A stretch of 46,389 nt of DNA, taken from assembly GCA_000708835.1 (NCBI GenBank), contig DF237603.1, positions 1-46,389 on the forward strand. Direction: 5' to 3'. The translations under genes and the position numbers were made by a program. The stretch's first letter is position 1; the number at the start of each line of letters is the position of its first letter. Shown here piece after piece: positions 3,901-46,351 of this stretch. This DNA comes from Klebsormidium nitens (taxonomy: Eukaryota; Plantae; Klebsormidiophyceae). The notes below the pieces were generated by a model, which was given only the letters and a program-made list of their open reading frames with translations, had not been told where the DNA came from and did no database searches.

Positions 3901-6900
3901 ATCTTGAAAGGTACATGGTGTACAGGGTTCCCTTGGCGCCGGTTGTCAGCGGTTCTGCTTCCCAGGATTGGGAAGTCCGGCCAGCATGCGAACTTCCTTT
4001 TCTTTCCGTGCAGGTCAAGAGCAACATCTTCGAGCTTCTGGCTGACCTGGCCTGGTCCTTCTCAGACATGCAGCTGGACAGTCTCTTCAACCGCTTTGAG
4101 CGAAGCAAGGTAGTGATCTTGATTCTCTTTTAAGCTAGAGAGGGACGAGAAAGAGATTCAAAGTTCTCTCTTGTCTTCCCGGCTTTGCTTCTTGTTTCCT
4201 TCCCGAAGTTCGGCGGATTGACCGACAAGACCAGACGGGCTGAGTGTCTGCTGAAAGCTGGCCTCACGAATCCTCTGATCTTGGTGTGAGAGCCTTCGAG
4301 TTTCACGATTGCATCTCCTGTCACGGTCCTGCTGCTACCTGGCTTGACTCCTTGTCGTTCTTGCAGGATCGCCCGTCGGATGATGTGTTGAAGGTGCTGC
4401 AGCTCATTAAGAAGCTGGCGCGGAGCGACACCAGGGGTGTCATGGCGCACAAGTAGGTGTTTTAACGTTCTAGCCACCGGCTGGCACTATGGACGAGCCC
4501 GATTTTGACGACTCTACCATACAAGAGTGGTGTTCCGGTCTCATGCAATTTAGAAAGCAGAATTTTGCCTTTTGACACTAGTACAACGATAGCAGATACT
4601 GGGCTTGACACTCCCCCTCTTCTCGTGCAGGCTCCTAGAGCTCCTCTGGAACATGCTTCTGTCTGGGGAGGCCCAGGGCGAGATCCTGGAGTCCAACTCC
4701 TTTGTCGAGATCTTGCAATACTACGACTCAGTCAAGCGTGCCGACAAGCAGGTGAGCTTCCGAGGGTTACGTAGCTTTCCTGCTCCTCGCCTCCAAAGAT
4801 CGCACAGTGTCTAGTTTGCGGAGACTCCGATAGTGTGCTCAGTTCCATCACAACGAAACATAGTTATAACACTGGCCAATGACAGAACTTTGGATGGCTC
4901 TAAAGCGGCAGTCAATGAGTTAATGCCTGTTGTGCTGCTTACAAGCAAACGTTTTGGAAATTGAAGGTCAGACGTCTTGCGTGTCAGGTATCTGCGATTC
5001 TGCCATCGAGAGAACTTATGCAAGTTCTCCGTGCGCAGGTGTACATAAAGCGCTGCCTCTCATCCATCGAGAAGGGCCAGGCCGTCCTCCCCTGCCTTTC
5101 CCTGCTGACGAGTATCTTCTTGCAAGACGACACCAACGTGGCCCTTCAGGTACCTCGTCACGAGAGTTGTTGACAATTTTCGTGCATCAATTCAAGGCAG
5201 GGAAATCTCGGGCTGAGGCGTTTTTGAACGGTCGGCCGAAACCGGTCTTACCGCTTCCTTAGAGAGACGGCCGTCGTGACGAAGAGCCCTTCTGAGCAGA
5301 CTCCTTCTGCTGGCGTAGGCTTCCTCGCTAATATGCCCAGTGGCTTCTCATGAACAGGTCTCGATTGTACTGCCACACGGAACTTGCGTTTGACACCCAT
5401 GTGTTTGACACCCTCTTGCGTCGCTCGCAGGGCCAATCCCAGCACTCTCCTCGAGTACAGCACATCAACGAGCTCGAGAAGCAGCACGGGATGGTCAGCT
5501 TGGTAAGGGATTGCTTCATCATTGTGAACTTCATTTCGTCATCATTGCTTCATGAATGTCCACGTAGGCACCATTGATTGTTTGGAACCTGCCAACTTTT
5601 GACTCGCGAGGAGAGTACCTTGTAACCGCTGGACTCTAGACTGTTGCGGAGGACCGATGCCCGAGGTTGCTTCATTGTTGTCGCTTGAAGGTTTCAAAGG
5701 CGAGCTTGAGTCGTTTCGCTGTTGTTGTCTTCAAGGTGTCAAAAGTTAATCGGCGACTCTGACTCATAATGTTTATAAAGACTCGTTTATTTCTGTGGCC
5801 AGGGGATGCACCTAGCCCCGTGGGTTGATGGAGATATGCTCGTTGCTTGTCAAAGCTTCAGTGGAGGATGCCGCATCTGGAGACATAGCCAAGCGATTCC
5901 TTGCTGCTTTGAATGCAGGTCGCAAAGAGTCTCGAGGTGTACATGGCACACGCTCGCTCGCTCGCCCCGGAGCTTCTTGAGGGCGCCAACGGGTCGAAGC
6001 CGGCCCCCGTGGACGGGCAGAAAACGCACGAGGAGCAGATCATGAGCAGGCTCAACTTCATGTTCTTCATATTGAACGTAAGCTTCCCCGTGCATGTGAG
6101 AAGAGGAACTCGGAAGACAGCAGGTTTTGTGATGTTGAGAAGTCGGTGACGCTTTTTTGTGTCCAATAATCGCGCGAAGGTTTCAGGTCTAGAACCTAGA
6201 TTGCAAGTCTTCTGTAGGCGAGAAGCTGTATGAGCGACTTCAGCAATTTTTGCAGAATTTGGGGGTGCCTCCGAGGAAAGTCAAGTCGAACTGAATTCTG
6301 CATCCGGGAGGTCTTCAAAGCCAAGTCGCTTCAAGTATTTCGACCGTTGTTTGATGAGCAGTAAATATACTCTCCGAGACGAAAGCCATTCGTACTAACC
6401 TGTGGCCATTTGTTGCTTGACACAGCTGGTTGAGAAGTTCTGTTGGATACAGTTGAACAGCGCTGTCAGAACAATTTTGGATTTTAAGAAGTGCGTTATT
6501 CACAATATTCATCTAGCTCGCCTAGCTTTCTGTTCTTGTCCTTCTCAACACTTCCCGTGCTGCTTGCTCTGTTTGCAGTGGAGCCAGCACGATCTTTCCT
6601 GGGACGTCGCGGAGCTTATCTGGGAGTGCCTGGTGGTAAAGGGCGCGTGCAAGTCCGACGCGGATCGAGCCATGACCTGGCTCCACCGCCTGCTGTCCAA
6701 GGGGTCTGCTGTCCTCATCTCCGCCGAGGCGCAGTCGAAGCTGCTGCTGCAGAAGATGTCGCAGATCGACCCGGCGGACCTGTCCATGATCGGTTATCAG
6801 TAAGAGATCGAGCACTGCAAAACTTCTCTCGGTGTCTGATTGTGCCGCCCTTTTGCTGAGATGCTTAGGACTTGGGCAAGGGCTGCGCGATTGTCTTTTG

Positions 6901-42612: not shown

Positions 42613-44082
42613 GTGAGCCCGTGAATGGCCGCATGAGAGCATGCGAGTGTCCGCTTGGGTCGGATTTCTGATCTTTGTGATGTTGCTCCCATGTTTCGCG
42701 TAGGCCGCCGCAGGCTGTGAGCATAGCTCGGTCACTGTCGAAAACGCGGATTGCAGAGCGGCCAGAGAGTGTGGACTGTCGTACTTTGTGCGCAAAAGAC
42801 GCCTCAGATTGAATGGAGTTTTGATCATACTTGGCTTTCCACTTCAGAGTACGATTTGTAAACCACGCGCCACTTAATTGAGCTGGCAAGGGCGGTGGAA
42901 ATGACGCTGCTGTTTTATCATGTAATGTTGAGATCAGCATCAGATCAATGGTCTGCCACCATGATCCGGTCACCCTATGTGCCAAACGCTCGTCGCATTA
43001 CTGGTAGCTCTGCAGAGCGCAACCAGATTCTTATTAACCTAGAATTGGCCCGGATGCGATAGACCTGCTTGCCGTCCATCAATAGTTCCAAATCTGTACA
43101 TTAGAGTCTCCCGCATGTCCATGTGTCACGCGCAGATATATATCGCCTTATCGATGCGCCTGGCCGTCGATGCCAACTGGATAGCGGCCGGCCAATGAGT
43201 GAACGATAACATCAACATCCCGTTGCAACATTCCGAATTTACCTCCTAAATCATACGGAGAGTCTTATGATTGTCGTGTCTTCCGAGTCGTCCTAGCTAC
43301 ATCACACGTACTGGTCGTCAAAAGAAGGCCTATAGCAAGTATGAATAACCGCAGTTTGTATCGAACCGACCACAGTATGAGACAGCCGCACTGCAGGTAT
43401 ATTCTGCTGGACAGTCCAGCTCGCCTTGTAGAATGCCAATGGCAATCTCAAATACATAGTACGTCTACGTACGTACCTTTGTAAAGCCGGCCTGCGCTGC
43501 CCGCGCTACAGAATTCCACCAGCGAGGCGTGGCGCTTCAGTTCATTTTCTGATCATGCATCGATGCCTCCCTTTCACAACATTGTGACGAAATAAACACG
43601 GGTCTCCGCTGAAGAATGAGGTACACTCCGCCGCCGCCGCCGGCAGTGCACAATTTGCACATCAGCCGAATTCACCGGCACTCTAGGGAGCCTCTCATGT
43701 TGCATCATGCTCAAGGTTACAATATAGTTGGTGAGTGGCCATGAACAAGAAGGATGGCATACCAAGGCGCCTTACTTAACTCAATATCTCTTCCTTGGGT
43801 AAACTGGAATCAGAGTTTGTCATCTCCGACCCATCTCCGAGTTCATGATATTAGCGACGGGGCTGCCTGTCATTCTTATCCGGAGGTTACGATTGTGCAC
43901 GTGAACCGGGCCTACCGATGGGTTTGAAGGGTACGGTTCAAGAGGGCGGCCGCGCCCAGCCGCGCGTACCCGTTCCCCTTGCGGCTAACCCTTCTTATTT
44001 CGTCACAATATTACCAACGCCATTATCACTTTTCACCTGCCTGCGGGTGCTCGCCGCTAAGTCCTCCTCCAAGAAAGGCAGC

Positions 44083-45647
44083 ATGGCAGCTCGGCCTTCC
44101 TCCCCGCTCTCCTGTTTGTTCTAGCACTGACGTGCCGGAGGTCTCTGCACACGTCAGCAGCGCGCATCATCAAGCCTGGAAGCAGCTACCTTCCCAGCCT
44201 CGACGACCAGCTGCCGGTGGAGAAGGCACCAGCTGACGCCACCCCGCCGAACCCGTGCGGCCATTTTGACTCCGATGACCCCCTTGACGCCGGCAACGCG
44301 CATCAGCCGTGCTATGGACCGGATGGGGAGGTTTGGTATTGCTGGTAATTGCGCCATACTACTTTCTCTAGGTGCCTGATCGCTTGACTGGTTGAGTGAT
44401 GCTGCTGTCTCTTCTCTTGTCGGACGTGCTTGATCATTTGTAGAGCTTGACCTTGACTTGGCAAAGGCTGCCATTGGGCCCCTCAACGAATCCTCTTCAG
44501 CTTAATGTATGCAATCCTTTGAATGAGATTGGGAATGTGCACGTAAGTTGATCGAACTTCGCCTGTTCAATCAGTGAACGTTATCCTAGCCCAACTTCCT
44601 TTTAATCAGGATTTTGATCACTGATCAATCAAGATTAATTGATTAGAGTTTTGTTCACTGTTTGAACGAGCGAAATTCGGTCAACTCATGCACATTCCCA
44701 ATTGACCATGACGACGTCCGAGCCTGACTCAGCCTTTGCCATGATCTTAAACAAAGACCAGGATTATCTAGCTCAAGCTTGCTGGCTATTGTGCGAATGA
44801 TCCCCTTCGAAAACTAGCCACAAGGTCACACTGACCTTGCAATGCGCATATAGAATTTGAGCCGGCGCTGAATAGTGGCTCTGTTTCCTGTGCAGCCTTG
44901 CTGGGAGCACCATGTGCTCATGTCCGAAAGCTGTGATTGACCGTGATGCTGCCGCTGAATTTGGCTGCTACAACTACGTAATATCTGGTTGATGCTTTTA
45001 ATGTTACTTCTATCGAGTGTTTTTGATGCTGGCATGGAAGTATAAGACGTAGCGCCTCGAGTTCTCCCGTACGGTCGTTTGAATCAGACAAGTTGCTCAT
45101 GACTTTTGCAGCGACGTTAATGGCAAATAGTCGTCAGTTGTTGACCTCTATGCACGATTCCCCGATCTGTTCATTCTCACTCTTCAGACTCGATAGTTAC
45201 TTGCAAGCACACAGTAGTACAGTCAACCGCCAATGAGCTGACCTTTCACTTGACGGGCTTAACCGCTTGACAGCTCGAGTCCGTGCGCCACTAGCACTGA
45301 CGCAACTAATTGATTTGCCGGTGTTGTAGGTTGCAGACAACTCTCTGAATGCAAACACGGGCGCAGAGTGCGGCTACTTCTTCCCAGAGATCACAGGGTA
45401 CGCTGGCAGGATGCTCGCCGCAAACGCTACGGGCCACGCTTGCCCGCCTCGAGACAGACTCTCGTATCCTCTGGGTCCTGGTTCCACGAGTGGTTGTCCG
45501 ACAAGCGGCACCCTCTTCTGCTCCTATCCAGCTTTGCCGAACGAGAACCCCAACGACTTCTTTTGCAACTATGATGCGAGCACTGGACAGCTGACGCAGG
45601 ATAACGATGCGGGTTACTGCCTCTCCTCGGCTCCTGCGTGCAGCTAA
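44083..45647 (+). CDS. Putative small secreted cysteine-rich protein, 2 exons, ~188 aa; apparent 1-nt frameshift near the start (assembly error or young pseudogene)
   Basis: Exon 1 is 44083-44330. ATG GCA GCT CGG is one base out of frame with an open frame reading FLPALLFVLALTCRRSLHTSAARIIKPGSSYLPSLDDQLPVEKAPADATPPNPCGHFDSDDPLDAGNAHQPCYGPDGE, which ends at a phase-0 GT donor (GAG|gtttgg). Exon 2 is 45330-45647 (gtgttgtag|GTT): VADNSLNANTGAECGYFFPEITGYAGRMLAANATGHACPPRDRLSYPLGPGSTSGCPTSGTLFCSYPALPNENPNDFFCNYDASTGQLTQDNDAGYCLSSAPACS*. Confidence 0.65.
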
Positions 45648-46040
45648 CAAGGGCGTGCTGCGAGCTTAGAAGGCAAGGGCTAAGTTCCAACAACCAAAGT
45701 GCTCATTGGGAAAGCTAAGGTTTGCTACATTTGTCCTAACTTCGAACTAAAAGATCGGGGGTTGTAGCTAAGCGAAAACGCAAGACTGGTTTCGAGGCTC
45801 TGGCTCGATCCATGTAAAAACTAATAGGTTCGAGGCGAATAAGGCTTCTTGGAGCTTACAATCAAACTGAAATGAACCTAAAGCTGTCGCTCAGAAATTT
45901 TAGAGACTCAACATAGTACGCGTGTGCCGGCGGCTTTCGACATCATGGACACTGAAGACGGCCAAATACTTACTAGTAGCTTCCATATAGCATGCGCATC
46001 GGGAAACACACAATCGATTTTTCTCCTCACAGGCAGCTTC

Positions 46041-46159
46041 TTAGGCACGTATCATGCTGCGTTTAGGCTATCTTAGGCATGCCTAACAGTGGCAAACCTG
46101 CCTAATGAACATTAGGCATGCCGAGTGGGTCTTAGGCCGGTCTTAGGCAGGTTTTAGGC
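46041..46159. repeat. Cluster of 9 TTAGGC/GCCTAA hexamers in both orientations, with palindromes
   Basis: TTAGGC at 46041, 46063, 46073, 46112, 46132, 46143, 46154; GCCTAA at 46081, 46100. Perfect palindrome ttaggcatgcctaa at 46073-46086. Hairpin gcctaatg-aa-cattaggc at 46100-46117. Confidence 0.85.
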
Positions 46160-46351
46160 AACTTAGTGCTTTCTCACAGTGATCTATCGTACGAGAACGC
46201 ACGAAACTGCATGAAAGCCTTATGATTACGGGTTGACGTACGATTGCTGCACGCAACTAACGGGGACGGCATATTGCGCCGCAAGCCCGCCGCAAGCCGA
46301 CAAGCCTTGCCATGCCGAGGGCGGTCCGTGCCGGGTAGTGTCCAGATAGCG

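Follow-up and report, generated by a model that had tools for sequence, protein, structure and literature searches.

The 46,389-bp scaffold DF237603.1 of Klebsormidium nitens NIES-2285, which in its entirety is the window analyzed here, carries on its + strand the gene KFL_006540050 (protein GAQ90551.1). We identify this gene as coding for a small cysteine-rich protein with a predicted signal peptide, an eight-cysteine module that is restricted to Klebsormidium, and a C-terminal four-cysteine domain of about 64 residues that is shared with fungal and bacterial proteins. Our interpretation, to which we assign a probability of about 70%, is that this is a native three-exon gene with a secreted, disulfide-rich product, and that the C-terminal domain was acquired horizontally and acts as an extracellular module.

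The frame that contains the 5' part of the gene (frame 0, + strand) is open from a TAA at 44058–60 to a TAA at 44346–48 and contains no ATG; it encodes a hydrophobic, signal-peptide-like N-terminus followed by a cysteine-containing stretch. There are very probably three coding exons, at 44083–44344, 44896–44977 and 45330–45647, all on the + strand. Exon 1 encodes the signal-peptide-like N-terminus and the first part of the Klebsormidium-specific cysteine-rich module, and its donor at 44345 (CTG^GTAATT, where ^ marks the boundary) is homologous to that of the paralogue KFL_000770260 (CTG^GTAAGG). Intron 1 (44345–44895; 551 nt, GTAATT...GTGCAG) has splice positions matching the paralogue and splits the first Cys codon of exon 2 (tg^c). 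Exon 2 (44896–44977) is only 82 nt long and encodes (C)LAGSTMCSCPKAVIDRDAAAEFGCYNY; tblastn with this exon identifies a matching exon in the loci L001 (63% identity) and L002 (70% identity), and the paralogue protein P0010 has a homologous stretch (...GPDGEVWYCCLSGSSMCSCPTVVIDAPKDYGCYNYVADNTLNANTGAECGYFFPE...), the window counterpart of which is made up of the extension of exon 1 to 44344 together with the 82-nt exon. Intron 2 (44978–45329; 352 nt, GTAATA...TTGTAG) is in phase 0, and exon 3 (45330–45647; 105 codons plus TAA) encodes the end of the N-terminal module, a conserved NAT sequon (45423–45431) and the C-terminal domain, contained in a CPPRD...LFCSYPALPNENPNDFFCNYDASTGQLTQDNDAGYC stretch; its peptide is 100% identical to residues 87–191 of GAQ90551.1. 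The exon solution for KFL_000770260 (E1^GTAAGG...GTGCAG^E2^GTAAGT...TGGCAG^E3) is reproduced at exactly homologous positions in the window (CTG^GTAATT...GTGCAG^CCTT...AACTAC^GTAATA...TTGTAG^GTT).

The product of the three exons is ~220 residues long, open throughout apart from a one-base break in exon 1, and aligns end to end with both K. nitens paralogues (59% and 40% identity) with a common cysteine framework. The mature part contains 14 cysteines. Searches were run exon by exon, and the joined translation was used only for the cysteine count and the paralogue alignment. At ~220 aa (<300), with 14 mature cysteines and no Pfam match, the protein falls into the operational class of fungal effector-like small secreted cysteine-rich proteins; the class is not defined by homology and has no bearing on effector function, the carrier here being an alga.

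The deposited GAQ90551.1 (P0001) is 191 aa long, begins MRQHGSS and joins ...GPDGE to VADN...; together, the gene span of 43616–45647 and the MRQHGSS start fit only the segments 43616–43620, 44078–44330 and 45330–45647. The 5-nt 'first exon' of this GenBank/Augustus model (43616–43620, + strand, ATGAG^gt, with a 457-nt intron to 44078) is probably not a real exon but a device by which the gene predictor bypassed the missing base, since the paralogue starts at an ATG homologous to that at 44083. The initial annotation, made from the sequence without database searches, had recognized the ATG-less frame with its signal-peptide-like stretch and the sequon in the last exon, both as described above, and had also joined 44330 to 45330. 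This join is in phase and equals that of the GenBank model, but the donor lies at 44344 and the 82-nt exon at 44896–44977 is skipped, and in both versions the join is very probably wrong. The deposited gene model is probably faulty in two places, the 5-nt first exon and the skipped exon, which is relevant to users of this proteome.

The search for paralogues that the initial annotation had proposed yields two in the K. nitens genome, KFL_000770260 (GAQ81333.1; P0010, 207 aa) and KFL_008320010 (a GAQ92196-type entry, P0159), located on other scaffolds of 233 kb and 30 kb; there is none elsewhere within the window. Both resemble the window gene in having three exons with identical splice positions, a predicted signal peptide, the eight-Cys N-terminal module and a C-terminal four-Cys region. 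They differ from it in that their start codons are in frame and their C-terminal domain is decayed, with the FCSYPA and ENPNDF motifs lost or deleted, and the profile hidden Markov model (HMM) of the domain described below detects KFL_000770260 at only 9.7e-14 and misses KFL_008320010. Because the window copy is the only one of the three K. nitens paralogues with the canonical motifs, it is most likely to be the one that would have kept the ancestral activity. The N-terminal module, with its eight conserved cysteines, has no relative outside Klebsormidium and none was found in a metagenome scan; searches of the ESM Atlas with exon 3 and with the paralogue N-terminal module returned no usable match.

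A further family copy with the same three exons is present in L002, an independent Logan contig (run SRR23617307), in which the adjacent gene is 75–77% nucleotide-identical to the neighbour of KFL_000770260. From this synteny we assign L002 as the orthologous locus of KFL_000770260 in a second Klebsormidium-like organism, which would place the origin of the family before the split of the two organisms. The L002 copy (750–2952) looks decayed: its ATG is out of the body frame by an offset equal to that in the window, the intron-1 donor GT is changed to AT, and FCSYPA and the cysteine framework have been replaced (P0087). Programmed frameshifting, which the like offset might suggest, was discarded as an explanation, as L002 corresponds to KFL_000770260 and not to the window gene, and is degenerate in other respects too. 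We also note a palindrome, TGACGTCA, in the signal-peptide part of exon 1 in the paralogue (L001, about 4046–4053) and its orthologue (L002, 819–826); at the matching place the window gene has TGACGTGC (44125–44132).

The ATG at 44083 has a good context (GGCAGCATGG), lies one frame off the body of the gene, and leads into a TAG at 44122. DNA alignment of exon 1 with KFL_000770260 shows that the ATGs of the two genes are homologous and that the window is one base short directly after a CCCC run at 44103–44106, such that the break falls between 44106 and 44107 (paralogue TCCCCTGCTCTCCTG, window TCCCC-GCTCTCCTG). When the gap is allowed for, the window N-terminus parallels MGRSPSPALLLVVVLAVL of the paralogue, and the hydrophobic N-terminus is homologous to the signal peptide of the latter, although the assembled sequence has the ATG offset from it by one base. 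The initial annotation was correct about the one-base offset of the ATG, but had placed the break immediately after a CGG codon, and it is located a few codons beyond this. No other copy of the 5' end was found in a metagenome scan with 0–2 extra bases allowed at the C run. Errors in homopolymer length are a recognized weakness of 454 chemistry. The K. nitens genome was assembled with Newbler from Roche 454 and Illumina reads (PMC4052687). The missing base is probably an assembly error at the homopolymer, an explanation favoured by the otherwise intact gene and by a domain in which none of the invariant residues has been lost.

The alternative explanation for the break is that the one-base deletion after codon 8 is real, and that the gene is a recently dead pseudogene, translation of which from the ATG at 44083 would yield no secreted protein. 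Several observations count against our interpretation here: as deposited, the ATG frame ends at the TAG and the body frame lacks an ATG, L002 is visibly degenerate with a like frame offset and loss of both the GT donor and the domain cysteines, the c-region of the signal peptide contains two arginines, and the protein collection contains no transcript-derived protein of KFL_006540050. The presence of paralogues with degenerate domains also indicates that the family is prone to decay. We nonetheless regard a pseudogene as unlikely. One base aside, the frame stays open through each of the three exons and the splice sites are intact, 11/11 invariant domain residues and the 14 mature cysteines are retained, and the break lies in a homopolymer of a 454/Newbler assembly; the annotators' start (43616–43620 spliced to 44078) would likewise yield a signal peptide.

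The C-terminal domain is encoded at 45435–45632 (+ strand) without an intron. We defined the family from an alignment of 25 members (alignment A2), with the consensus C-P-x-x-D-x-x-G-F-x-L-G-(8-12)-[LI]-F-C-S-Y-P-A-x-x-G-E-x-P-N-D-F-[FY]-C-x-Y-x-x-x-T-G-x-L-x-x-D-[NH]-D-A-G-[FL]-C. Eleven columns of A2 are invariant (C, P, C, Y, P, D, F, C, G, D, C), including the four cysteines, and the window domain keeps all 11 of them together with 11/13 near-invariant columns (Y replaces F at 46 and N replaces G at 71). The window gene matches the domain HMM with an hmmsearch E value of 8.7e-29 over HMM positions 3–64 of 64, and exactly four cysteines are present in 123/191 full-length domains.

In comparisons with Pfam-A and NCBIfam, exon 1, exon 3 and the paralogues match no family at E≤0.1, and at E≤1 none of the 25 A2 members matches a model over the domain; the profile also has no match among PDB sequences (best E 0.23). 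AlphaFold2 with alignment A2 gives a predicted local distance difference test score (pLDDT) >90 for 68 residues (about exon-3 residues 35–105) and three short strands, and the predicted model has no fold match either with Foldseek (best E 3.7) or with VIA-align against 48,161 chains (best Z 3.3). Searchable literature contains no relevant paper for the locus tags, the Laccaria protein IDs or the motif strings. As judged from these comparisons and the predicted model, this is an undescribed extracellular domain with no solved-fold counterpart, as the initial annotation had suggested in one of its two explanations. The acidic D-x-D-x-G preceding a conserved cysteine (DNDAG-x-C) is reminiscent of the Excalibur/DxDxDG calcium loops, which also occur in extracellular disulfide-bonded modules. 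In contrast to these, the third Asp is absent from the domain, the likeness is a resemblance only, and neither Excalibur nor any other Pfam model is matched by the A2 members at E≤1.

Exon 3 was compared by HMMER (phmmer) with 1.84 billion representatives and matched 157 proteins at E≤1e-3, of which 57 reach E≤1e-10; a profile search for the domain gave 183 proteins. The motif that the initial annotation had given is therefore real, with a near-exact consensus and matches far beyond chance, and its attribution to uncharacterized small secreted proteins of Agaricomycetes is borne out by named members in Tulasnella spp., Jaapia argillacea, Laccaria bicolor, L. amethystina, Mycena spp., Pholiota molesta, Flammula alnicola, Hypholoma sublateritium, Athelia psychrophila and Exidia glandulosa. 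Other named fungi with the domain are the microbotryomycete Phenoliferia psychrophenolica and, as one partial ascomycete entry, Leptodontidium. Tulasnella is orchid-mycorrhizal, and Mycena and Pholiota are saprotrophs. K. nitens is the only named eukaryote beyond the fungi with the domain among the 1.84 billion representatives, in which no other named plant, alga or eukaryote was matched, consistent with the view of the initial annotation that the module is not a plant one.

The fungal genes are located in large fungal contigs, in tandem arrays and beside ordinary fungal genes. Their products in Basidiomycota, for example Tulasnella FRB94_001814, Jaapia JAAARDRAFT_40205, Laccaria bicolor LACBIDRAFT_295587/295588, Phenoliferia RQP46_008735 and the L. 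amethystina tandem array K443DRAFT_675193–675197, are small secreted proteins that share with the window gene the domain (45–59% identity), a predicted signal peptide and membership of multi-copy families. Unlike the algal protein, they lack the algal N-terminal module and have the domain straight after the signal peptide, followed by a K/R-rich tail (28/34 named). In L. amethystina KN838560.1 (L014 8001–15196) there is a tandem array of at least three family genes encoding 142, 144 and 141 aa, with one intron of 56–61 nt each, flanked by a SKN1/KRE6 glucan-synthesis gene and further fungal genes, so that the family has expanded locally in this ectomycorrhizal species.

Contrary to the fungal association made in the initial annotation, the domain is not specific to fungi. 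Nine bacterial loci are present in GTDB species representatives, all of them metagenome-assembled genomes (MAGs) and spanning at least five phyla, Chloroflexota among them; the carriers are Candidatus Binatia (two loci), Acidimicrobiaceae (on a 5.0-Mb chromosome), Actinomycetes, Actinomycetota, Anaerolineales, Caldilineaceae, Alphaproteobacteria and Gammaproteobacteria. As proposed for the alga, the setting is extracellular and the domain is readily recognized (44–56% identity). The bacterial surface proteins differ from the algal protein in being large and multi-domain, with stalks of Big_3_5, PKD, TIG, Calx-beta or DUF7933 and PEP-CTERM or MYXO-CTERM anchors; the genes have no introns, and the domain is at times tandemly duplicated. 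An example is the 652-aa open reading frame with five Big_3_5 repeats in the Acidimicrobiaceae MAG OY969891.1. In many metagenomic proteins the domain similarly occurs alongside Big_3_5, PKD, TIG, Calx-beta, DUF7933 or ricin-B and PEP-CTERM or MYXO-CTERM tails, partners of which Big_3_5 and the two tail types are exclusively bacterial, and the domain lies in the first third of 36/54 long proteins. The neighbourhoods of three bacterial MAG loci share nothing (transposase, HerA, phosphatase, LytR_C). Four metagenome or Logan proteins (P0204, P0069, P0088 and P0054) combine the domain with Dicty_CTDC, GCC2_GCC3/ephrin-receptor-like, Stig1 and ricin-B modules, and these eukaryote-flavoured partners hint that other eukaryotes of the soil, for instance amoebae, may also carry it.

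We propose that the Klebsormidium lineage gained the domain through horizontal transfer, that it was there fused to the lineage-specific N-terminal module, and that the fused gene was then duplicated to give at least three paralogues, with bacteria slightly favoured over fungi as the donor. The domain itself may be a compact extracellular ligand-binding or adhesive module with two presumed disulfides, in which the invariant aromatic and acidic motifs (FCSYPA, E-x-P-N-D-F and D-[NH]-D-A-G) would be displayed as a fixed binding surface; candidate ligands of such a surface are a glycan, a wall polymer or a cation. An extracellular role is suggested because every context is extracellular, be it the tip of a bacterial stalk, a free fungal protein with a basic tail or the algal secreted protein. 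In bacteria the domain usually comes immediately after the signal peptide, as the N-terminal head of an Ig-like stalk with a C-terminal sorting signal, and this layout would be that of an adhesin or receptor head. A role for D-x-D-x-G-x-C as an extracellular calcium loop is suggested only by resemblance and is supported by no model. A bolder proposal, which we view as doubtful, is that an undescribed compact disulfide-bonded fold moves horizontally among soil bacteria of several phyla, basidiomycetes and an early-diverging terrestrial streptophyte, serving as an extracellular recognition or adhesion head in each, and that it was acquired and expanded in Klebsormidium for life on land surfaces or for contact with soil microbes.

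Horizontal transfer into the Klebsormidium lineage is probable from the patchy distribution of the domain, and the question of the donor has to be addressed with trees that rest on 68 alignment columns and are largely unresolved. A 176-row tree places the window domain with the Acidimicrobiaceae protein and other bacterial-type rows, with weak support (Shimodaira–Hasegawa-like approximate likelihood ratio test, SH-aLRT, 81), and the Acidimicrobiaceae protein is also the nearest row when the long paralogue branch is removed. When the tree is restricted to the 63 named rows, path length puts Tulasnella, Laccaria, Jaapia and Mycena closest to it. No starred clade holds the window domain in any of these three trees. 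In approximately unbiased (AU) tests, the two algal copies as one clade are not rejected (p 0.39), whereas a single clade of all eukaryotic rows is rejected (p 0.007), as is one of all fungal rows (p 0.003 and 0.018).

Gene structure provides a second line of evidence. A phase-0 intron is present within the domain at the same site (C-x-Y-x-x^x-T/D-G) in 4/4 basidiomycete genes examined (Laccaria YCKYSA^TTG, Jaapia FCDYSA^TDG, Phenoliferia FCTYND^STG and Tulasnella FCTYDS^STG), which argues for a single fungal ancestor, and for this reason we treat the AU rejections as a possible artefact of the short alignment. This intron is missing from the three Klebsormidium loci, exon 3 running uninterrupted across the site both in the window gene and in KFL_000770260, and its absence mildly favours either an intron-less bacterial source or a transfer predating the fungal intron over a recent basidiomycete donor. 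The donor evidence is thus in conflict with itself on 68 columns, the AU tests rejecting the single fungal clade that the intron favours, and this too detracts from our interpretation. A route from bacteria to the alga is put forward tentatively, at a little below even odds.

Transfer between fungi and the alga in either direction, with a basidiomycete gene for a small secreted protein as the source, was the other explanation offered by the initial annotation, and it survives as one of several routes, although another is better supported. In its favour, no single domain is more similar than that of Tulasnella (59% identity over 68 columns), the 63-row tree has the four fungal genera nearest by path, and both the alga and the fungi are soil dwellers. 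On the other hand, no tree gives a supported fungal sister and alga and fungi share no supported clade; the 176-row tree puts the alga with the Acidimicrobiaceae protein, the basidiomycete intron is absent from the alga, and the fungal proteins have a K/R-rich tail in place of the algal N-terminal module. We therefore consider this route improbable, at perhaps one chance in five.

A third possibility is that the domain was inherited vertically from an ancient ancestor in both bacteria and eukaryotes, with massive loss and no transfer. A short domain could go undetected in divergent lineages, and 2/3 K. nitens paralogues are already hard or impossible for the HMM to find. This scenario is nevertheless very unlikely, in that it needs dozens of independent losses across eukaryotes, the domains of alga, fungi and bacteria are 45–60% identical and the fungal rows are intermixed with the bacterial ones, and the 1.84 billion representatives include no match in named plants, algae or other eukaryotes beyond K. 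nitens and the fungi.

Finally, although the scaffold is short (46 kb) and the domain elsewhere fungal or bacterial, the idea that the scaffold or the gene is a fungal or bacterial contaminant of the algal assembly is effectively refuted by the further spliced algal genes on the same scaffold (such as ASCC2), by GT-AG introns that, at 551 and 352 nt, do not resemble the fungal ones of 56–88 nt, by the paralogues on two other K. nitens scaffolds and the syntenic copy in an independent assembly, and by an N-terminal module exclusive to Klebsormidium. Judged by this sequence context, KFL_006540050 is a genuine native nuclear gene of K. nitens.

Two other features of the region are of note. Intron 1 contains, at 44528–44702, an imperfect inverted repeat resembling a miniature inverted-repeat transposable element (MITE), with arms at 44528–44579 and 44650–44702 by local alignment; the arms (52 and 50 nt) are ~85% complementary over 52 nt with one 2-nt indel and enclose an AT-rich core of ~70 nt, and there is no second copy of the arm in the window. 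Near the scaffold end, at 46040–46165, at least six copies of (C/T)TTAGGC(A) are present in both orientations within ~125 nt (for example tcttaggcatgcctaa, cattaggcatgcc and tcttaggccggtcttaggcaggttttaggc), a cluster that could be a transposon end or a protein-binding array.

Klebsormidium provides a reference genome for the arrival of plants on land, and there is much debate about foreign genes in streptophyte algae. KFL_006540050 offers a clean, intron-bearing and duplicated case of a secreted domain that is otherwise found only in soil bacteria and fungi, chiefly basidiomycetes, and that is multi-copy in ectomycorrhizal Laccaria and in Tulasnella, Mycena and Pholiota. The extracellular domain is new, unnamed and cross-kingdom, and a streptophyte alga of key importance has plausibly acquired it horizontally; what it does and which way it was transferred are inferred. 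Defining the domain would give a name to hundreds of secreted proteins that are at present 'hypothetical'.

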